Source of the DNA: Hyalangium minutum
Lineage (GTDB): Bacteria; Myxococcota; Myxococcia; Myxococcales; Myxococcaceae
Assembly (NCBI RefSeq): GCF_000737315.1
Contig: NZ_JMCB01000016.1
Span: 10,052 to 74,051 of the forward strand
DNA length: 64,000 nt
Direction of reading: 5' to 3'
This document shows positions 10,858 through 21,954 of the stretch, piece after piece. The notes under the pieces were generated by a model. It did not search any database, was not told where the DNA came from, and saw only the letters and a list, made by a program, of their open reading frames with translations. The translations under genes and the position numbers were made by a program. Position 1 is the first letter of the stretch, and each line of letters begins with the position of its first letter.

Positions 10858-11793
10858 ATGAACGCGGAGGCGCTGGCCAACCTCGAGGAAGGCGCGAGCG
10901 GGGAGCGCACCCTGCGCATTGCAGGCCGCGAGCTGCGCCTGACCCACCTGGACAAGCCGTTCTGGCCGGAGCTGGGCATCACCAAGGGAGACCTGCTGCG
11001 CTACTACGCGCAGGTGGCGCCGGTGCTGCTGCCCCACGTCGCGGACCGGGCCATGGTGATGAAGCGGTACCCGAACGGGGCCTTCGGGCCGTTCTTCTTC
11101 ATGAAGCGGGCGCCGGTGCCACGGCCGGAGTGGGTGAAGACGTGCTCCATCACCCACGGCTCGGGCAACGTCATCGACTTCCCGGTGATTGGAGACCTGG
11201 CGTCGCTGCTCTGGGTGGTGAACCTGGGCTGCATCGACCTGAACCCCTGGTACGCGCGGTGCGATGACGTGCTGCGGCCGGACTACCTGCACTTCGATCT
11301 GGACCCGGGCCAGGCGCCCTGGGAGCAGGTGGTGGAAGTGGGCTTCATCCTGCGGGACGTGCTCAAGGGCCTGAAGATGCCGCCGCTGGTGAAGACCTCG
11401 GGCTCCAAGGGGCTGCACCTCTACATCCCCATTCGCCGGGGCCCGACGCAGAAGCAGGTGTGGACCATCGCGAAGGCGCTCGCGCAGGAGCTGGCCGCGG
11501 CGCACCCGGAGCTCGTCACCGCCGAGTACCGCATCGCCAAGCGCCCCGTGGGCCGCGTGCTCGTGGACTACAACCAGAACGCGCTGGGACGCACGCTGGC
11601 GTCCATCTACTCGGTGCGCCCCACGCCTGACGCCAGCGTGTCCACGCCCGTGACGTGGGAGGAACTGGAGAAGGGAGCGCGCATCGAGGACTTCACCCTG
11701 CGCAACGTGCCCGCCCGCGTGAAGCGCCGGGGAGACCTGTGGAAGCCGCTGCTGTCCGCGAAGGGGCGGGTGGACTTGGGGAGGTTCCTGTGA
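10858..11793 (+). CDS. LigD-type primase-polymerase (stand-alone polymerase domain)
   Basis: LTHLDKPFWP, KRYPNG, HFDLDP, KTSGSKGLHLYIP, VDYNQN, SIYSVRP. Confidence 0.92.
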   Translation: MNAEALANLEEGASGERTLRIAGRELRLTHLDKPFWPELGITKGDLLRYYAQVAPVLLPHVADRAMVMKRYPNGAFGPFFFMKRAPVPRPEWVKTCSITHGSGNVIDFPVIGDLASLLWVVNLGCIDLNPWYARCDDVLRPDYLHFDLDPGQAPWEQVVEVGFILRDVLKGLKMPPLVKTSGSKGLHLYIPIRRGPTQKQVWTIAKALAQELAAAHPELVTAEYRIAKRPVGRVLVDYNQNALGRTLASIYSVRPTPDASVSTPVTWEELEKGARIEDFTLRNVPARVKRRGDLWKPLLSAKGRVDLGRFL

Positions 11794-12881
11794 AGCCGCC
11801 ACGTACCGCCGGGCCTGCCTCGTGGGCAGCGCTGGACTTGCCGCTGACGCCGCCGTACCCGCCCATGGAGGCGGAGCTGGTGCGGGACATTCCCCCGGGA
11901 GACGACTGGCAGTACGAGCCCAAGTGGGACGGCTTCCGGTGCATCGTCTACCGGGACGGGGACCACGTGGAGCTGCAGTCCAAGGCGGGCCAGCCGCTGG
12001 GCCGGTACTTCCCGGAGCTCGTCGAGGCCGTGCGCGAGCTGTCGCCCCAGCGCTTCGTGCTGGATGGGGAGATCGTCATCCCGGAGGAGGGCGGGCTCTC
12101 GTTCGACGCGCTGCTGCTTCGCATCCACCCCGCGGCGAGCCGGGTGGCCATGCTGGCGAAGCAGAGCCCCTCGCGGCTGTACGTGTTCGATCTGCTGGTG
12201 GACGCGCGGAGGCAGCTCCTCACCGACAAGCCGCTGATGGTGCGGCGGGAGAAGCTGGAGGCGTTCGCCTCGCGCTACCTGGAGCCAGCGGGGCAGATCC
12301 GGCTGTCACCGGCGACGCACTCGCAGAAGGTGGCGCGGGCGTGGCTGGGCTCGCAGGGGATGGATGGGGTGGTGGCCAAGCGGCTGTCTTCCCAGTACAC
12401 GTCAGGCGAGCGCACGGGGATGGTGAAGGTGAAGCCACAGCGCACGGCGGACTGCGTGGTGGGAGGCTTCCGCTGGGCGGAGCGGCGGGAGAGTGGGGTG
12501 GGCTCCATCCTGCTGGGCCTGTACGGGAAGGACGGGCTGCTGCACCACGTGGGTTACTGCTCGAGCTTCTCGGCGAAGGACAAGAAGGAACTGGTGGAGC
12601 CGCTGGAGTCCCTCCGGGGTGCTCCGGGGTTCACGGGCAAGGCGCCGGGAGGCCCGAGCCGCTGGAGCAAGCGGGACGGGGCCTGGGAGCCGCTGCAAAC
12701 GCGGTTGGTGGTGGAGGTGGCGTACGACCACTTCAGCCAGGGGCGTTTCCGGCACGGCACCCAGTTCGTGCGCTGGCGCCCGGACAAGGCGCCGGAGCAG
12801 TGCCGCATGGAGCAGGTGCTGCGGCGGCGCTCGCGGGCCGAGGTTCCCTACGTGGAACCGGGTGACGTCCACGCCCCGTGA
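11790..12881 (+). CDS. ligC: ATP-dependent DNA ligase, LigC-like
   Basis: YEPKWDGFR motif I, LDGEIV, VFDLL, DGVVAK, MVKVK, FRHGT. The GTG start overlaps the previous stop codon. Confidence 0.88.
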   Translation: MKPPRTAGPASWAALDLPLTPPYPPMEAELVRDIPPGDDWQYEPKWDGFRCIVYRDGDHVELQSKAGQPLGRYFPELVEAVRELSPQRFVLDGEIVIPEEGGLSFDALLLRIHPAASRVAMLAKQSPSRLYVFDLLVDARRQLLTDKPLMVRREKLEAFASRYLEPAGQIRLSPATHSQKVARAWLGSQGMDGVVAKRLSSQYTSGERTGMVKVKPQRTADCVVGGFRWAERRESGVGSILLGLYGKDGLLHHVGYCSSFSAKDKKELVEPLESLRGAPGFTGKAPGGPSRWSKRDGAWEPLQTRLVVEVAYDHFSQGRFRHGTQFVRWRPDKAPEQCRMEQVLRRRSRAEVPYVEPGDVHAP

Positions 12882-12946
12882 GCTAGGGAGCGCGGACCCG
12901 CCTGCACCGCTGGAAGTCGTGGGTGTGATAACCCGTCTGCTGCTCT

Positions 12947-13079
12947 GGGAGCGAAAACACCGCCGCAGGCGTAACGCTGTGGAGGTAACGGCGGTACCGC
13001 GCTCTTGAGTGGGGGGAGGAGCGCGGTGCTGCTAGGGATACTTTACTCCGGGCAACGGGTTCGATTCCCACCGCCTCCA
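12947..13079 (+). ncRNA. Candidate tRNA-like structured RNA (TPsiC loop plus alanine-type acceptor end); not a canonical tRNA
   Basis: 5' GGGAGCG can pair with 3' CGCCTCC-A (G3:U70, one mismatch). Internal perfect stems ACCGCCG/CGGCGGT and ACCGCGCTC/GAGCGCGGT; GGG-TTCGATT-CCC T-loop. Confidence 0.4.
13056..13079 (+). other. tRNA/tmRNA-type 3'-end sequence, probable attachment (att) core
   Basis: CGGGTTCGATTCCCACCGCCTCCA has the T-loop and acceptor pattern of tmRNA/tRNA-Ala 3' ends and sits just before the IS and foreign DNA. Confidence 0.6.
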
Positions 13080-13085
13080 TTCCGA

Positions 13086-13124
13086 GAATCCCAGTAATCT
13101 TGAAGGGGTGCTGGGTTTCTCTTT
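13086..13124 (+). terminator. Hairpin with T-rich tail after the tRNA-like 3' end
   Basis: gaatcccagta / tgctgggtttc imperfect stem followed by tcttt. Confidence 0.45.
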
Positions 13125-13144
13125 GGCCTCGTTTTCATCATGTG

Positions 13145-13155
13145 CCCCAGTGTAC
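13145..13155. repeat. Target-site duplication, left copy (CCCCAGTGTAC)
   Basis: Identical 11-mer at 14799-14809, abutting the right IS end. Confidence 0.85.
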
Positions 13156-14798
13156 CAGGCCTGCTGCGTTCTCCTGGGTGAGGATGGGAAGAAGGCGCCT
13201 GGGAACGGGAGGTTACGCACAGAAGAGGGGGAACGGAATCGGAGACGACCTTCCAGGTCGCTGTTCTGATCGCTTCCCTGGTGGGTAGGAAGTGCTCGAC
13301 ACTGAGGGAGCGGACAGAGGAGGAGGGACGGGGCCGGCGAGCCCCATCCCCCCAATGCCCCGTTCTGCGAGGCACGCGGAAGCGGGGCAGGAGGAGTCGA
13401 GCATGAGTGGACTGGGAGGGGACAACAGCGCCGAGTGCTGCAGCAGGCGCGGGTGGCGTGGGACAAGGCAGTGAAGGACCCGAGGGATGGCCGAGGCAGG
13501 AGGCATGGGCACCTGGGGTTGTTGGGGCTGGTGGTGGTGGCCTTCGCGGTGGGAAAGAAGGGGCTGAAGCAGGTGGCGCAGTTGGCCCAGGACGTGGGGG
13601 CGAGGACGCGAAAGCGGCTGGGACTGCCGCAAGCGGTAGTAGGCTCGACGCTGTGGCGCTTGCTGGAGAAGCAGCCTGCGGCCGGGTTGCGGGAGACGAT
13701 GATGGCGCAGGTGCAGCAGGTGCTCAAGGACCCGAGGACGCCGCGACTGGCGTTTCCCATGGGCGTGTTGAGCCTGGATGGAAAGAGCCTGTGGACCACC
13801 CACCAGGGCGAGGTGAAGGGCTTGGAGTCGGTGGCCAACAACGAGGCGGGCCGCGAGTTGTGGAGCCAGGGGGCGCTGCGGGCGGTGCTCACCAGCGTGG
13901 TGGCCGCGCCGTGCCTGGACATGGAGTTTGTCAGCGCCAAGCAGGGAGAGTCCCCCGCCTTGCGGCAGTTGTTTCCTCGGGTGGTGCAGGCCTATGGCGA
14001 GCACTTCGGGGTGGCGACGGGGGACGCGGGACTGACGGCCGCACCAAACGCCGCGCTGGTGCGACAGTGGGGCAAGCACTACTGCTTCGGGCTGAAGGCC
14101 AATCAACCTACCCTCCATGAGTACGCGGTGCGTGTCATCGCCGCCAAGCAGTGTCCGGCTCGGGCGCGAACCCAGGAGCGGGCTCATGGCAAGACGGTGG
14201 TGCGTGAGCTGTGGACGCCCGCGCTTGAGCCGGGCGAGGTGGACTTCCCGGGAGCACGCATGCTGCTGCTGGTGCGCCAGCAGCACTGGGGCGACGACGG
14301 CACCTGCGAGGAGGAATACCGCTACTTTGTTACCTCCCTGGACACCACCCTCTTCACCTTCAAACAACTGCTGCGGCTCGTACGGGTGCACTGGGGCATC
14401 GAGAACCGGCACCACTGGACGCTCGATGTGGTGCTAGGCGAGGACGAGCACCAGCCCTGCCGCCCCACCCGCACGGCACTGGAGGTGGTGGCCTGGTTGC
14501 GTGCCATAGCCTTCAACCTGCTCTCCTTCTTCCGCGCGCGTCTTCCTCTGGAAGGCCGCCACCTCGTGCAGTGGGATCGAGCCTGCGAACTGCTCCGCGA
14601 CAGCCTCGTCCACGGGCGCAGGCTGGAGACTCTCCTCACTGCTGCCTGAGGGCTCGCCGGCCCTCCCTCCGCTCCTGGCCGCCACAGCCTTCGTTGCTCA
14701 CGGCGCTCCGGCCGAGCGGCGGAGCTTTGTCTCAGCGCTCCTCGCTCTCATACGGCGCCTTCACGCAACCGCAATCGCCCGACAACGCATCAGATCTG
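13156..14798 (+). mobile_element. Complete ISAs1-family insertion sequence (1643 bp)
   Basis: Imperfect terminal inverted repeats: CAGGCCTGCTGCGTT (left) vs CAGATCTGATGCGTT (right end, reverse complement), both with gaaggcgcc further in. Flanked by a direct repeat; encodes a transposase. Confidence 0.85.
13435..14649 (+). CDS. ISAs1-family DDE transposase
   Basis: LSLDGKSL, TGDAGLT, GLKANQPTL, RVHWGIENRHHWTLDVVLGED (ISAs1 signature). The RBS-preceded ATG at 13403 is one base out of frame with the GTG at 13435. Confidence 0.9.
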   Translation: MLQQARVAWDKAVKDPRDGRGRRHGHLGLLGLVVVAFAVGKKGLKQVAQLAQDVGARTRKRLGLPQAVVGSTLWRLLEKQPAAGLRETMMAQVQQVLKDPRTPRLAFPMGVLSLDGKSLWTTHQGEVKGLESVANNEAGRELWSQGALRAVLTSVVAAPCLDMEFVSAKQGESPALRQLFPRVVQAYGEHFGVATGDAGLTAAPNAALVRQWGKHYCFGLKANQPTLHEYAVRVIAAKQCPARARTQERAHGKTVVRELWTPALEPGEVDFPGARMLLLVRQQHWGDDGTCEEEYRYFVTSLDTTLFTFKQLLRLVRVHWGIENRHHWTLDVVLGEDEHQPCRPTRTALEVVAWLRAIAFNLLSFFRARLPLEGRHLVQWDRACELLRDSLVHGRRLETLLTAA

Positions 14799-15121: not shown

Positions 15122-15946
15122 ATGCACTTCTCGGTCATCGCCCAGCAGGATACGCCACTGCCAGAAGCCCATCGCTGGGCAGCAGTAACGTGTGGGTGCA
15201 AGCCCGATGTCACCCTAGAAGAGGATGCTGCGGCAATGGTGCGGGCAGCCTACGGCGAGCAGGAATTCTTGGCTCAGCTTGGTCAGGTAGACCCTTCCGT
15301 TGCAGCAGACTTCGACCTCTCAAGCATCATGAAGGCATTTGGCCGAGGACTACCGGATCCAAAGGCCGAAGGAGACAAGCCTAGGCGGCTTTCAAACTTC
15401 CGGGCTGAGACGGCAGAGGTTCTTGCAAAGGCTGCTTTGGCAGACGTCTATGCAATTGATTTTCCTATTTCGGAGCAGGCCGGTAAGCAGAACGCGAACC
15501 AACCTGTCTTGGGATTCGACGGGTGCGGCTTCGTCACAATAGGCAACTCGACTGCTCTCGTGTTAGTGACCGTTAAAGGAAGTGACGATGCGAATCGGCC
15601 TCCTGCTATCGCTCAAGAACTCATCAAAGAGTGTACGAAAGCACCTAAGGAGCCAGACAAGCTGTGCCGCACTCTCACCGCGTTACTACTGCGAGTGAAG
15701 AGCGCAGCAGTGAAGGCTTCCATCATCAAGATGCTGGAACTTCTGGGGAAAGCTGTTCTCCCGAAGATTGTCGTTGCTCCAGTACTCGTTCGCGGAAAGA
15801 TTTCGGCCCATTTAGATGACCTCGGTTCAGTCATGAACGCGGTCGCCAACTTTTCCCCTGCCACGACGTATGGACTCGTATTAGGCGTAGGTATTACGCT
15901 CGGAGACTTTGGCCACTCAGTCATGTTGAAGGCGAGGGCTGACTGA
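15122..15946 (+). CDS. HamA-like / PD-(D/E)XK-like protein, putative defence nuclease subunit
   Basis: RAETAEVLA...KQNANQPVLGFDG...LVLVTVKGS resembles the GE-LL / K-x-G-x-D / E-x-K layout of HamA (DUF1837). AT-richer codon usage; TGATG overlap with the helicase. Confidence 0.55.
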   Translation: MHFSVIAQQDTPLPEAHRWAAVTCGCKPDVTLEEDAAAMVRAAYGEQEFLAQLGQVDPSVAADFDLSSIMKAFGRGLPDPKAEGDKPRRLSNFRAETAEVLAKAALADVYAIDFPISEQAGKQNANQPVLGFDGCGFVTIGNSTALVLVTVKGSDDANRPPAIAQELIKECTKAPKEPDKLCRTLTALLLRVKSAAVKASIIKMLELLGKAVLPKIVVAPVLVRGKISAHLDDLGSVMNAVANFSPATTYGLVLGVGITLGDFGHSVMLKARAD

Positions 15947-18900
15947 TGGACGAGTTCCTCCAACTTGCTGAAGCCCAAGAAGTATCCACCCTCCTGAGCA
16001 AGGTTGATACCGCCGAACTTGCTGTTCGTCTGGGCATTGACACAGTAACCACTCCACCAAAAGCCGAGGCTCGGCTGCGAGTAGCAGCAGTGACCGCCTT
16101 CGCTCAGCGAATTAACGAACTCGGCGGCTCTGACTTCCTTCGCAACGACACAGATGCACTCGACGCTGTACATGAACAGGCTTGGCGTGCGGTGTTCTAT
16201 AAGTGGACTGGGTACCTCAGTGCCATGGAGGCACAAGGAGCGTCTCCATCCATAGACGACCTCATCCTCGCAGTCGCTTCCGGCTTAGCAGCCCGGCGAC
16301 CAAGCGACGTACGCTTCATGCTCCATCGTCCCTTGGTTGGAACCGCGTTGGCGAGAGCTGCTACTGCGCAGCCCATGTGGGACCAGCGGGTACGTAACGA
16401 TATTGGACGGTCGTTAGTACATCTTGTGCGTCAGCGAGATCATGCTGATGTCGCAGAATCTGGCGAAGTCATTCGTCAACTAATGGTGAATCAGAAGACT
16501 GCTGAATCGCAGCGGTTTGAGCAGCAGAGCACGAAGTCAGGTGCATTCGGGCTACTTGGCTTATATCACCTTGCTGAAGCGACGATTCGAACATCCGAGT
16601 TCCTCCTCTCTGGCGCTGCAGGAAATGGGGAAAGAAAGAATCGAGACTTTGCCCCACAATTGCGACGCCTTCTCACGCGTGCCGAAGAGTACCTCGAACT
16701 TGCAGGAGACCCAGAGGCACTGCTTTGGCTGACCGGTGTGGCACTCGTCTTGGAATGCATCCGGAGCGATTCTCTCTGGACCCAGGCACGAGGCATTTCA
16801 GAAGGTCTCGATGCACTACTCGCAACAATTACTAGCAATGAACGCGAAAAACCGGTCTTCAGTCTTCTGCCTTCTCAGCAAGAGGCTTTACGTCAGCATC
16901 TTCTTGACCCAACCAGAGTCGCTGTTGTCCTTCAAATGCCGACTAGCGCGGGAAAGACCCTTCTTGCCGAATTCGCGATAGTTCAAGCTTTTGAGGCATA
17001 TAAGACTGGCACTCGCGCCATCTATCTCTGCCCCACTCGAGCATTGGCAACCCAAATTCGTCGGACACTTGGGGAAGACTTGGCGAGAGTGGGTATTCAG
17101 GTATCGGTCGCTGGGAGCGCGTTCGAAGAGGACCCCTTTGAACTCGAATTGCTTGAATCGTCCGATGGCGTAATTGTTGCCACTCCCGAGAAGCTCGATC
17201 TGCTGTTGAGAGCCCATCCTACATGGGCAGAAACACTGCGCCTCGTTATCGTAGACGAAGCACACCTCCTTAAAGACTCCGAGCGAGGAGTGCGGTTAGA
17301 ATTGCTTCTCGCGAACCTCCGTCGTGAGCATCCAGCGACACGCCTCCTATTACTCACCCCCTTCGTCGAAAATGCCTCTCAGATTGCAAGTTGGCTTGGC
17401 GAAAGCCGTGGGACACCCATTTCGGTCCATTGGCGCCCTTCTCGCGTCCTTTTAGGCCTCGCAACAATCAAGGGTGGAGGAAAGAATCGTGCACTCACAG
17501 TTGAATGGAAGGAACCGCACGAGAGCGCGCGAAAGCCGGACAACCTCAAAGTGCATGTTGACGTGCCCGCCGGCTTAGTCAACTCCGCTCAAGATCGTGT
17601 CGCCTATCTTTATGAACGCTTTAGCAAGCTTGGCACAGTTTTGACAATATGCAGCAATTCGCGTGTTGCTGCCGAACAAGTAGCCAGTAAGGTTGCTTTT
17701 GCTCAACCCGTGCTGGCTTCGACAACTCCGGCCCTCCGAGTTGCGATAGCACTAGCCCGCCATGACTATGGTGATGAGAGTCTCCTTGCAAATTGTCTTG
17801 AGCGGGGAGTTGCATTTCACCATTCTGCCTTGTCGCCCACTTTGAGGTATCTTGTTGAGGACCAGATCCGCGCTGGCACCATCAAGTTTGTGGCAGCAAC
17901 GTCGACCCTTGCACAAGGAATGAATTTCCCTGTGGCCGCAGTTCTTGTGCAGTCGGTTCACAAGCCCGAAGGCGCAGGTCCTCTGACGCCAGGAGAGTTC
18001 TGGAACATTGCTGGCCGTGCAGGCAGGGTTGGTGTTGCGGACCGTGGTGTTATTGTCTTCGTCAATCCCCAAGACCGCGAGCACTGGGAGAAATATTCCT
18101 CAAGCCTATCGGAGTCGCTCACATCGGCTCTTCTCTCAATTCTTGGGCAGTTAGGCGACGGGGCCTCGCTCAAAGAGCTTTATAAAAAGCATCCTGAACT
18201 CAGGCCTTTCATTCAGTACTTGGCGCATGCTGCCGCAACGTTAGGCCCAGCGAAGGCCACTGCCGACCTAGAGGAACTCCTCCAAGCAAGTTTGGCTAAC
18301 AGACAGGTAAAGTCTGGAGTACAAGCACAGCGGCTCAGAACCATTGCTCGATCCTATCTTAGGGAGATCGGCGGTAAGAATACCGGGTATCTGAAGATTG
18401 CGGATACTACCGGACTTGGTTCCTTCAGTTTCGACTCGCTCTTCGCTCAGATCACGCATGATGAGGTGCTGCGCAGCGGTCCTGGGGAGATTCTGCGCCA
18501 GCGGCAGAGAGGGCTTGACCACCTTGTCGATGCGCTCCAATGGCTACCAGAACTCAACCTAGCTATCGGGCTTGGTGAAGGCCAGATGGATGTGCAAGCC
18601 GTCGCACGCATCGTCCAAGGTTGGATGGACGGGTCCCCCATTCATAAGCTTGCATCCGAATTCAGAGGGAAAGACCTTCCTGAACAGACTCGCAAAGCGG
18701 GTGCTTACGTTTACAGCAAGGTATCACAGACCATCTCGTGGGGCGCGCACGCTTACCTTCGTGGCTGGAGCATGCGAGCAAATATCGACGTGGATAAGAT
18801 TCCACCCAAAGATGCCATGCTGCCTACCTATATTCAGTACGGCGTCCACTCTCCCGAGGCGGCGGTGGCCTCTCTTCTAGGAGTACCTAGAGCTTTTTCA

Positions 18901-19095
18901 CAAGCTGTGGGTGATGAATTCCGTCATGCGCACGGCGCACTCACGCCATCTGCGGCGTCCAAATTTAAAGCGTTCGTGGAAACGGCCGACGTCGCCCAAT
19001 GGGAGCGTATTGTGGCTCGGTGTTCGCTAAATGTCCGAGCTGAGGATGTACGCATCATCTGGAGGCAAATGCAGGGTATCGCAGAGCGAGGATAA
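15946..19095 (+). CDS. Ski2-like DEAD/DEAH-box helicase, HamB-like
   Basis: MPTSAGKT, PTRALATQ, ATPEKLD, VDEAHLL, FHHSAL, ATSTLAQGMNFP, NIAGRAGR; about 300-aa helical N-terminal extension; foreign codon usage. Confidence 0.9.
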   Translation: MDEFLQLAEAQEVSTLLSKVDTAELAVRLGIDTVTTPPKAEARLRVAAVTAFAQRINELGGSDFLRNDTDALDAVHEQAWRAVFYKWTGYLSAMEAQGASPSIDDLILAVASGLAARRPSDVRFMLHRPLVGTALARAATAQPMWDQRVRNDIGRSLVHLVRQRDHADVAESGEVIRQLMVNQKTAESQRFEQQSTKSGAFGLLGLYHLAEATIRTSEFLLSGAAGNGERKNRDFAPQLRRLLTRAEEYLELAGDPEALLWLTGVALVLECIRSDSLWTQARGISEGLDALLATITSNEREKPVFSLLPSQQEALRQHLLDPTRVAVVLQMPTSAGKTLLAEFAIVQAFEAYKTGTRAIYLCPTRALATQIRRTLGEDLARVGIQVSVAGSAFEEDPFELELLESSDGVIVATPEKLDLLLRAHPTWAETLRLVIVDEAHLLKDSERGVRLELLLANLRREHPATRLLLLTPFVENASQIASWLGESRGTPISVHWRPSRVLLGLATIKGGGKNRALTVEWKEPHESARKPDNLKVHVDVPAGLVNSAQDRVAYLYERFSKLGTVLTICSNSRVAAEQVASKVAFAQPVLASTTPALRVAIALARHDYGDESLLANCLERGVAFHHSALSPTLRYLVEDQIRAGTIKFVAATSTLAQGMNFPVAAVLVQSVHKPEGAGPLTPGEFWNIAGRAGRVGVADRGVIVFVNPQDREHWEKYSSSLSESLTSALLSILGQLGDGASLKELYKKHPELRPFIQYLAHAAATLGPAKATADLEELLQASLANRQVKSGVQAQRLRTIARSYLREIGGKNTGYLKIADTTGLGSFSFDSLFAQITHDEVLRSGPGEILRQRQRGLDHLVDALQWLPELNLAIGLGEGQMDVQAVARIVQGWMDGSPIHKLASEFRGKDLPEQTRKAGAYVYSKVSQTISWGAHAYLRGWSMRANIDVDKIPPKDAMLPTYIQYGVHSPEAAVASLLGVPRAFSQAVGDEFRHAHGALTPSAASKFKAFVETADVAQWERIVARCSLNVRAEDVRIIWRQMQGIAERG

Positions 19096-19834: not shown

Positions 19835-20240
19835 ATGCTGCGGATCTACAAGCCGGGCTCGTTCTTGAGAATACCTCTTGCCGACGGCTCTTGGGGGTAC
19901 GGCCGGGTGCTCAAGTTGCCGCATGATGCCTATTACGATTAATGGTTCGCCATATGGAGGAGAGAGCGTGGGAACTCATCGGGTGGAGGGAACTGGAGGA
20001 GCCGTTTTCTCAACCTATCCTCCACTATACCCAGGACATTGGGAACTTCCGCGACTGCAGGATCTTCGGCACCGCAGGCAATTCGAGGAGCGCGGAACCC
20101 CAAGAGGTATTGGGCTTGAGTACTCGGCTGTCTGGGAAGAGGTGGGAGTCGAGCAACGTCTGCTCGACTCCTTCATGGGGCGGCCCAACGCCTCGGTGGA
20201 GCGCTTGAAGGTGCGCCTGAAACTAGGAGGCTCCCCATGA
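19835..20240 (+). pseudogene. Disrupted Imm26-family immunity gene
   Basis: MLRIYKPGSFLRIPLADGSWGYGRVL then TAA at 19940-19942. The remainder (WELIGWRELEE...; AVWEEVGVEQRLLDSFMGRPNA) lies in shifted frames and is paralogous to 62619-63077. Confidence 0.85.
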
Positions 20241-21607
20241 AGCGCTGGGCGGTTGTGCTGCTGTTCGCATCCCTCGTGGGGTGCACCCCAACGAAGGTCG
20301 TCCGCCTGGACACAGGCCAGGGCAGGCCGATCATCCACGTCCCGCGCCGTGACTTGGGGCCGGTGGAGGTGAGCCAAGAGAAGTTCAAGGAAGCCGTAGC
20401 CGAGCACTCCCCCTCCGTGCCAGCCGTGGAGCGGCCTCTAGAATACGCCGGGCGGTTGTTCGATGTGCCGGAGCGAAGCGGTTGGTTCTGGTACGAAGGC
20501 AGGAGTCAGCGGCTCATGGCCTCGGAGCCGGGGAGTACCCCGAACCTGCGATTGCTGCCCGAGGACGGGGAACTGAAGCGCCGCTACCTGCTGTGGTGCG
20601 AGGAACTCTGGGGCGGCGGAGATTGCCTGCGGTTGCTGGTGGACAAGCCCTTCCTGGATGGGGATGCCAAGTACGCGCTGGCCATGGCCATTGCTCACAG
20701 CAAGGTGCTGGGGGCCATGAAAGAGGAACTCGCCCGGATGGTGAACCCCCAGGCGGTGGTGGCGACCGTAGTGGGCGGCCTGACCATGTACGCAATATTG
20801 CTCGCCCTGCCCGAGCCGGTGAGCAAGGGCGTGGCGGCGCTGTTGACGCTGGGGGCCATCGCCTACCTGGGCTGGGACACGGTATGGCGGCTCATGGATG
20901 GGTGGCTGGTGTTGATGAAGGAAGTGGATCAGGCCACCACCTTCGACGGCATCTCCGCGTCCGGAGAGAAGTTCGGGGACACAATGGGGGAGAAGGCGGC
21001 ACGAGCCTTCGTCATGTTGGGCACGGTGGCCCTGGGAAACACGGCTTCGGGGATGGCTGCGACATTGCCGAAGTTGCCAGGGGCCGGGCAAGCGGCGGTG
21101 GTGGCCGAGACGCAGCTGAACCTCCGCTTCACGGCCCCTTCTCTGGCCCAGGTGGAGTCGGTCGCCATCACTGCCGAGGGCGTCACCATCGCGCTGGCTC
21201 CCAATGCAGTCGCCATGGTGGCTCGCGACAGTTCAAGCAGCACCGTGGGAAGATTCAGGGCAGGCACTTACGGTGATCTCAAGAATGCTGGCATCAAGGA
21301 CGCGCACCATGTGATTCAAGATGCCGCCGTTCGTGAGCTGCCCGGATATGACAGTCGTGCAGCCCCTGCTGTTGAACTGAAGGGGCCAGCGACGCGCGTT
21401 GGCACTGCACACTATGAGGCGACTCAGGTTCAGCGTCAGGCTGGGGGAGGGACCTATGCGGACGAGCGCAGGATCGCCTATGAGGCCCTGCGACGCGCGG
21501 GACTGTCTCATGAGGAGGCGCAAACGCTGATTGGCCGCGCCGATGACTACTTCAAATCGATCGGTGTCACGCCATCAACACCGACCAGAATCCCTGGCAA
21601 CCGGTAG
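20237..21607 (+). CDS. SitA5-type lipoprotein polymorphic toxin with a putative HNH/EndoVII-fold nuclease tip
   Basis: Lipobox LVG-C then TKVVRLDTGQG; conserved myxobacterial core (CLRLL, DAKYALAMAIA, GWDTVWRLMDGW); C-terminal DAHHVIQDAA...TAHYEAT. Confidence 0.8.
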   Translation: MKRWAVVLLFASLVGCTPTKVVRLDTGQGRPIIHVPRRDLGPVEVSQEKFKEAVAEHSPSVPAVERPLEYAGRLFDVPERSGWFWYEGRSQRLMASEPGSTPNLRLLPEDGELKRRYLLWCEELWGGGDCLRLLVDKPFLDGDAKYALAMAIAHSKVLGAMKEELARMVNPQAVVATVVGGLTMYAILLALPEPVSKGVAALLTLGAIAYLGWDTVWRLMDGWLVLMKEVDQATTFDGISASGEKFGDTMGEKAARAFVMLGTVALGNTASGMAATLPKLPGAGQAAVVAETQLNLRFTAPSLAQVESVAITAEGVTIALAPNAVAMVARDSSSSTVGRFRAGTYGDLKNAGIKDAHHVIQDAAVRELPGYDSRAAPAVELKGPATRVGTAHYEATQVQRQAGGGTYADERRIAYEALRRAGLSHEEAQTLIGRADDYFKSIGVTPSTPTRIPGNR

Positions 21608-21618
21608 GAGGCCCCACC

Positions 21619-21954
21619 GTGGACATGAAATTGATGGGTCAGGTTCGGCGTCTGATAGAGGATCTGGCGGCAGGGCGGTATGCGGAGATCGCCGCGGATG
21701 GTCGAGCAGGGCGCCTCACTGAGGAGGAGTTGAGAACGGCTGTCGAGCAGTATGGGCGGACTCTCGTTCCCTTGCCAGTTGACGGTGAGATGCTTGTAGA
21801 TGTCTATGCGCAGACGTCTCAGCCGGGTGCGGTCACCCTAGATGTACCTCTGTGGACCCGGGAGGAAGGCCGCAGCGACCTGACACTTTCGGTGACGGCG
21901 ATCAAGCAGGGTGAAGCCTACACAGTCGAAGTGGACGATCTGCATGTTCTTTAG
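21619..21954 (+). CDS. Probable cognate immunity protein
   Basis: Small acidic protein directly after the toxin, with ggagg RBS; DVPLWTREEGRSDLTL motif. Confidence 0.7.
   Translation: MDMKLMGQVRRLIEDLAAGRYAEIAADGRAGRLTEEELRTAVEQYGRTLVPLPVDGEMLVDVYAQTSQPGAVTLDVPLWTREEGRSDLTLSVTAIKQGEAYTVEVDDLHVL

Follow-up and report, generated by a model that had tools for sequence, protein, structure and literature searches.

A 23-nt block 3' of ligC in Hyalangium minutum is probably an att-type fragment of the tmRNA gene ssrA rather than the end of a tRNA-like RNA gene

Downstream of the DNA ligase gene ligC, the genome of the myxobacterium Hyalangium minutum contains a short block, GGGTTCGATTCCCACCGCCTCCA (13057-13079), which we take, with a probability of roughly 0.8, to be an att-type fragment of the tmRNA gene ssrA and not a tRNA-like gene. 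This 23-nt block is the sole tRNA- or tmRNA-like portion of a 133-nt segment (12947-13079) that had originally been predicted to form a cloverleaf-like RNA with an alanine-identity acceptor end and oversized arms. Three readings had been offered for that segment. The one placed first, an undescribed tRNA-mimic ncRNA charged by AlaRS, finds no support, since its acceptor is a chance match and its U70 is common to every tmRNA. The last one, an att scar lying beside unrelated hairpins, agrees with the data, since similarity to tmRNA or tRNA is confined to the final 23 nt, which corresponds to the last ~24 nt that the prediction itself had associated with an att remnant. The segment is therefore best read as an ordinary scar that holds no new RNA gene, a further example of a familiar type of feature. 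All positions given below are those of the window, i.e., the whole 64-kb stretch of DNA that was analysed, and the features discussed are collected in Table 1.

Table 1. Features at and around the ssrA block, in window coordinates, with the orphan fragments from other loci in the last line
Feature	Position	Strand	Remarks
Source of the window			Hyalangium minutum, contig JMCB01000016.1, assembly GCA_000737315.1
ATP-dependent DNA ligase, ligC-type, 363 aa (P0001)	11790-12881	+	Pfam DNA_ligase_A_M, DNA_ligase_A_C
Three exact copies of GAGCGCGGWNCNGC	12888-12901, 12991-13004, 13019-13032	+, -, +	Cluster 12888-13032
GGGAGCG, proposed 5' acceptor strand	12947-12953	+	Chance match, not part of a gene
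Two adjacent inverted repeats (I1-I3 in the repeat scan)	12959-13033	+	Folding; no tmRNA similarity
Orphan tmRNA (ssrA) 3'-end fragment	13057-13079	+	Exact tmRNA-gene match; probable att-type identity block
Decayed terminator-like hairpin, T-rich tail and GGCC	13086-13128	+	Homologous to the Myxococcus dinghuensis ssrA terminator
ISAs1-family insertion sequence	13317-14680 (ends approximate)	+	Transposase 13435-14649
Candidate defence pair, PDC-M23A (274 aa) and PDC-M23B (1049 aa)	15122-19095	+	PADLOC; GC 54.6%
SitA5-family polymorphic toxin (Tox-SHH), then DUF7668 protein	20237-21954	+	NCBIfam SitA5_escort, 329.9 bits; Pfam (L121)
Orphan ssrA fragments at other loci	L018 (two), L042, L048, L056, L066, L069, L070, L100, L107, L130 (second fragment)

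The block comprises the last 3 nt of the T-stem 5' strand, the T loop, the 3' strands of the T stem and of the acceptor stem, and the discriminator A. In a scan with one genome per species, GGTTCGATTCCCACCGCCTCCA has exact matches at at least 120 loci from many phyla, and 95 of the 122 occurrences of the inner 22-mer among the matches listed coincide with the 3' ends of tmRNA genes called by ARAGORN; at one of the listed loci, L073, the tmRNA is seen by Rfam alone. Among the 95 are three tmRNA genes of Myxococcus/Myxococcaceae (L014, L029 and L079), which encode the tag peptide ANDNVELALAA. Its location at the 3' ends of called tmRNA genes identifies 13057-13079 as the T-loop-to-discriminator end of such a gene. 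As in the Islander definition of an att fragment, the block is a copy of the 3' part of a tDNA, identical to Myxococcus ssrA (L014, L029, L079) at 23/23 positions and to the host ssrA at 22/23, where CCCAC stands against CCCGC. BLAST comparison of the window locus with all matched loci listed never yields more than 23-25 nt of similarity, and the identity with Myxococcus and Hyalangium ssrA starts at GGGTTCG (position 13057), with none 5' of it; this start is the canonical T-stem/T-loop crossover sublocation of the same definition. To judge from these sequence comparisons, the block exceeds chance, being an exact copy of a tmRNA-gene 3' end. A tRNA-Ala gene as the source of the 23-mer is hardly credible. 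Two of the listed occurrences of the 22-mer (L026, L055) do form the 3' end of a tRNA-Ala gene called by ARAGORN, but both come from unrelated MAGs and stand against the 95 in tmRNA genes, and the flank that follows the fragment in the window is significantly similar to a Myxococcus ssrA terminator.

The elements from which the cloverleaf had been assembled are found in the sequence. These are the GGGAGCG of the proposed 5' strand, the 3' CGCCTCC (13072-13078) followed by A at 13079, the T-loop TTCGATT (13060-13066), and two perfect stems of 7 bp (12959-12965 with 12989-12995) and 9 bp (12996-13004 with 13019-13027). The irregularities that the prediction had conceded are equally there: the acceptor forms 6/7 pairs with an A:C mismatch, the T stem 3/5 (ACGGG/CCCAC), and there is no analogue of a D-arm, the places of the D- and anticodon arms being filled by two long hairpins. 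With an acceptor at chance level and an incomplete T stem, the region falls short of the normal acceptor/T/D/anticodon geometry of a tRNA. ARAGORN calls zero tRNA or tmRNA genes in the window and reports no tag, and neither a tmRNA tag reading frame nor the tmRNA pseudoknots were found. Rfam likewise returns no tRNA or tmRNA at gathering thresholds. Under permissive settings Rfam gives local tmRNA matches only, with 11.1 and 7.2 bits to RF00023 (gathering score 47) and 11.6 bits to the permuted tmRNA RF04321 (gathering score 47); the 7.2-bit match, which is the one seen aligned, covers the T arm only (GGGUUCGAUUCCC). The tRNA family RF00005 has no match to the locus even at E <= 10.

The pairing of the two ends, on which any tRNA-like reading depends, is at chance level. 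Within the 175 nt upstream, eight 7-mers pair at 6/7 positions with CGCCTCC, among them another GGGAGCG (12886), and at least one such partner is present in 83% of the 175-nt stretches drawn at random from the window sequence. This also qualifies the G3:U70 element of AlaRS recognition that the original prediction had emphasised: the pair is present, but it consists of the ordinary U70 of tmRNAs facing the G of a chance-level 5' match. The cloverleaf thus combines an ssrA fragment with the two inverted repeats next to it and with a 6/7 complement that happens to lie 110 nt upstream. A functional ~133-nt tRNA mimic or mini-tmRNA-like ncRNA 3' of ligC, matured with CCA and recognised by AlaRS, SmpB or EF-Tu, would account for several features of the region. 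In the minimum free energy structure computed by RNAfold (-64.4 kcal/mol), the two ends pair as proposed, and the whole 133 nt fold better than shuffles (z = -3.2); G3:U70 and the discriminator A are present, and just 3' of the segment lies a hairpin with a T-rich tail. That no CCA is encoded is no argument against such an RNA, since the host ssrA has none either. Nevertheless, we consider it very improbable in view of the chance-level 5' acceptor strand, the mismatch and the defective T stem, the missing D-arm analogue, the negative ARAGORN and Rfam results, the absence of the segment from this locus in five congeners, the lack of homologues in the collections searched and the degraded state of the downstream hairpin relative to real ssrA terminators. 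In addition, the promoter/terminator scan of the locus found no sigma-70-like promoter. Very improbable, too, is a domesticated att scar serving as a tRNA mimic, in which the foreign ssrA 3' module, from T loop to terminator, and the structured 110 nt before it would be transcribed, for instance by a promoter of their own or as the tail of the ligD-ligC mRNA, and processed to a stable RNA with a tRNA-like end that engages AlaRS, the CCA-adding enzyme or SmpB.

The inverted repeats that occupy the 5' part of the segment are real structure beyond chance and unrelated to tmRNA. The stretch 12959-13033 folds with -45.5 kcal/mol (z = -5.07), none of 200 shuffles being as good, and can adopt either the separate 7-bp and 9-bp stems or a single 17-bp hairpin (12990-13033). 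This longer hairpin is built by two copies of the 14-nt motif GAGCGCGGWNCNGC, whose only exact matches in the 64 kb are the three of Table 1, two direct and one inverted and all within 145 nt; the cluster may represent a set of candidate protein-binding sites. The 5' part is not conserved: it is absent 3' of ligC in five Hyalangium relatives, and searches of sequence collections were negative. BLAST of the 5' part against phages and plasmids gave no match, nor did a search of viral contigs with four exact-word patterns (5' strand, junction, hairpin and terminator), a kind of search that diverged homologues could escape. A metagenome scan with an exact 20-mer of the 5' part gave one match, a chance one within an unrelated coding region and with no further similarity. 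No second copy of the 5' part occurs in the window or in the host ssrA locus (L130), and its comparison with L107, a Myxococcaceae orphan ssrA fragment, aligned only a weak 14/19 patch that was taken as chance.

Directly after the block lies a hairpin in which CCCAGTA (13090-13096) pairs with TGCTGGG (13109-13115). The terminator scan returned nothing, the hairpin loop being larger than the limit of the scanner. The stretch 13086-13128 aligns with the flank of the M. dinghuensis ssrA gene (L029) with a Smith-Waterman score of 31, a value reached by 0/2000 shuffles (mean 12.8, sd 2.2), and among the 117 ssrA downstream flanks compared with the window hairpin, L029 is the top outlier; the flank of the host ssrA scores 17. 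The terminator of the host gene, GGCCCCGGCC...GGCCGGGG, is unrelated to the window hairpin. Folding energies of -14.3 kcal/mol in the window, -26.7 in L029 and -28.3 in the host indicate that the window hairpin is, as predicted by folding, weakened relative to real ssrA terminators. The CCCAC variant together with an M. dinghuensis-like terminator, unlike that of the host, makes fragment and terminator look foreign, and the window fragment is hence not a displaced fragment of the host gene. In M. dinghuensis itself (L029:2785-4760), this ssrA terminator, which resembles the decayed hairpin of the window, is unlike those at two other Myxococcus ssrA loci (L014, L079), and genes for a DUF2380 lipoprotein and a Gmx_para_CXXCG protein follow it directly as a toxin-like cassette; terminator and cassette suggest a related ssrA-associated element.

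The intact ssrA of H. minutum is located on another contig of this draft assembly (JMCB01000032.1; L130 1893-2252, minus strand), 1.9 kb from the end of that contig. It is recognised by ARAGORN, with the tag ANDNVELALAA, and by Rfam (183 bits), and it lacks an encoded CCA. It has the T stem GCGGG/CCCGC, which H. rubrum and Hyalangium sp. share, whereas the CCCAC of the window is of the Myxococcus type. Because ssrA adjoins an M16 peptidase gene in Myxococcus, orthologues of this peptidase were used to locate the Hyalangium ssrA loci; the M16 peptidase gene is absent from the window, and tblastx of the window against the Myxococcus ssrA loci gave noise only. A degenerate 23-nt direct repeat of the gene end, GGGTTCGATTCCTGCCGACTCCA, follows the host ssrA after 997 nt (L130 897-919), with 2 mismatches to the intact 3' end at L130 1894-1916, and it begins at GGGTTCG as the window block does. 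With an intact ssrA and a 23-nt repeat of its end, L130 bears the classical footprint of such integration, which shows that in H. minutum the 23-nt block serves as an att identity segment. The gene and its repeat bracket an islet of ~1 kb with a single 190-aa ORF (L130 897-2252), which resembles an ssrA island that is small or has decayed.

Similar fragments occur elsewhere. Besides that of the window, 11 ssrA blocks outside tmRNA genes were found among the matches listed together with L130 (Table 1). In all 11, tmRNA similarity ends at the (G)GGTTCG junction and is followed on the 5' side by unrelated DNA, often with inverted repeats; Rfam, run on most of these loci, finds no tmRNA gene in them. 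Two families of arms of ~150 nt lie directly 5' of the fragments, one at L018:3849, L042:1080 and 2264, L048:5600, L066:1759, L069:3390 and L070:4455, and the other at L018:466, L056:1686 and L100:2099. Both families are conserved in MAGs of different lineages, L042 carries two tandem copies, and one family has a perfect 10-bp inverted repeat, AGCGATACGC...GCGTATCGCT. The conserved arms are probably attP-derived arms of widespread elements that target ssrA. According to the Islander survey, the attP of an island carries part of the tDNA, by which the target gene is made whole again, no integration target is more enriched than the tmRNA gene, and the attP crossover lies in the T-stem region in 1836 of 3919 islands, the commonest class (PMC4383910).

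The common junction also bears on whether the block could be the remnant of a second, foreign ssrA gene, brought in complete with the island, whose ~340-nt 5' part was lost or scrambled by deletion and mutation and not by site-specific recombination. Fragment and terminator are indeed foreign (M. dinghuensis-like) and degraded in look, and GGGAGCGA at 12947 is one base off the tmRNA 5' end GGGGGCGA. However, matches of the GGGAGCG kind are common, one more lying at 12886, and the 175 nt upstream of the block (12882-13056) gave local alignment scores of 16-18 with three myxobacterial tmRNAs that encode ANDNVELALAA, from which the last 23 nt had been removed, against shuffle means of about 18.4-19. 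Scores below the shuffle mean imply that no residual tmRNA is present upstream of 13057. Moreover, a break exactly at the T-stem/T-loop junction, shared with the orphan fragments and the second fragment of the host, points to integrase-type recombination. A pseudogene of this kind is therefore improbable, and the decayed or miniaturised tmRNA of the original prediction fails for the same reason, with an intact host ssrA elsewhere in the genome.

The genomic position of the block fits an att fragment. The genes for the LigD Prim-Pol and ligC precede a breakpoint, and ligC is the last gene syntenic with other Hyalangium genomes: synteny ends at 12881 in the comparison with H. gracile, which is exactly the ligC stop codon, and at 12856 in that with H. 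versicolor. The DNA between 12882 and 30000 has nothing in common with the ligC-downstream regions of five relatives, namely H. gracile, H. versicolor, Hyalangium sp. and H. rubrum (10 kb each) and a JGI metagenome contig (~2.6 kb). In all six Hyalangium genomes compared, synteny breaks off at the 3' end of ligC (12881/12882 in the window, at about 11092 in L122-L126), the right-hand neighbours being a Fic gene, a GntR gene, an adhesin gene, an alcohol dehydrogenase gene, an unknown gene and the island of the window. Since each relative has different DNA after ligC, none of them offers an empty-site allele. The GC content, 65% in 12882-13056, drops to 58.6% in 13080-13330 and to 54.6% in 15122-19095.

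This DNA has several foreign features. The ISAs1-family transposase carries the Pfam domains DDE_Tnp_1 and DDE_Tnp_1_assoc and matches NCBIfam transpos_ISAs1 with 92 bits (cutoff 70), and the element has imperfect terminal inverted repeats of ~26 nt (about 13317-13344 and 14650-14680), in which 13331-13344 pairs with 14650-14663. It is inserted about 240 nt 3' of the ssrA fragment. The 13 nt GCCCCAGTGTAC recur in direct orientation at 13143 and 14797, possibly by chance. The PADLOC assignments of the defence pair have E-values of 1.3e-10 (PDC-M23A) and 4.8e-177 (PDC-M23B), the latter protein being a HamB-like (Hachiman-type) DEAD-box helicase. The SitA5 lipoprotein toxin and the DUF7668 protein, which is probably its immunity partner, form a kin-discrimination cassette of the myxobacterial type. 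The end of synteny and the foreign features on the right place the fragment precisely where conserved chromosome gives way to accessory DNA, so that foreign DNA adjoins the block, as the Islander definition has it (synteny end, GC drop, insertion sequence, PDC-M23 pair and SitA5 module). No tyrosine integrase was found in the Pfam annotation of the ORFs between 13.4 and 23 kb, and a second copy of the 23-nt block, with up to 3 mismatches, or of either of its halves, does not occur in the 64-kb window.

The block at 13057-13079 probably corresponds to the identity block that ssrA-targeting islands with a tyrosine integrase carry in attP and leave at their borders. In the explanation that we favour, it would mark the left edge of the acquired DNA (ISAs1 element, defence pair of 54% GC and SitA5 module) just 3' of ligC, and block and terminator would together be a half-site borne by the island, which in the usual case restores ssrA upon integration and provides it with a terminator. 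The island might have reached a position other than ssrA either by integration at a secondary site or by a later rearrangement. An origin as an island-borne half-site is the most likely one; an attL-like polarity of the fragment, favoured by its non-host type and that of the terminator and by the lower-GC DNA on its right, is a proposition that we hold to be evenly balanced.

The opposite polarity has to be weighed as well. The fragment could be a displaced native-type one, an attR or an intact attP, with 12882-13056 as the P arm of the element, the DNA on the right as flank of a donor and illegitimate recombination as the way in which the whole segment was acquired; the three GAGCGCGG motifs would then be putative arm sites for integrase or excisionase. 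All exact copies of the 14-nt motif in the 64 kb, three in number and in both orientations, are clustered in 145 nt on the left side of the core, which is consistent with this arrangement, as are the conserved arms with inverted repeats that precede other orphan fragments. However, the left segment has a host-like GC content (65%) and the right one a lower one (58.6%), no integrase was found on either side, and with 175 nt between the core and the conserved ligC nearly the entire element would be missing. This arrangement is thus unlikely, if less so than the remnant of a foreign gene discussed above.

Read as an att-type fragment, 13057-13079 pinpoints where a defence and toxin island of H. 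minutum begins on its left side. It also indicates that a foreign-type ssrA half-site can lie away from ssrA, by secondary-site integration or by rearrangement, both of which are missed by island finders based on tDNA. A word of caution for screens that work from sequence alone follows from the same observation: a T loop and an acceptor 3' strand with U70 are the standard footprint of elements that target ssrA, and in a genome of 66% GC a matching 5' strand is nearly always available nearby. Better candidates than 12947-13079 for genuine mini tRNA-like-domain RNAs are two short tRNA-like units with a tmRNA-type 3' block, one of 84 nt in a Fimbriimonas sp. MAG (L115:2822-2905, plus strand) and one of 70 nt in an Opitutales MAG (L010:3503-3572, minus strand). 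Both have a perfect 7-bp acceptor, in which GGAGGCG or GGGGGCG pairs with CGCCTCC, and a T stem with all of its 5 bp (GTGGG/CCCAC), and both are left uncalled by ARAGORN and by Rfam at gathering scores; the L115 unit has an encoded CCA and a strong terminator upstream.

What the window block has in common with the tRNA-like domain of tmRNA (RF00023) and with tRNA (RF00005) is the T loop, the 3' strands of the T stem and of the acceptor, the latter with U70, and the discriminator A; it lacks a 5' acceptor strand beyond chance, a 5-bp T stem, a D-loop analogue, the tag frame and the pseudoknots. The ssrA-specific genomic islands of Dehalococcoides are reportedly located at ssrA itself, unlike the window fragment. 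With respect to the tDNA islands of Islander, the window differs in that the fragment is an orphan, with the intact ssrA on another contig, no partner in the 64 kb and no integrase nearby; like them, it has a copy of a tDNA 3' end that starts at the T-stem/T-loop junction and lies at the border between conserved and lower-GC DNA. The closest comparison is offered by the host ssrA locus, in which the boundaries of the 23-nt block are identical to those in the window: there, an intact gene is accompanied by a repeat in the classical manner, whereas the window has the repeat alone and in another sequence variant.
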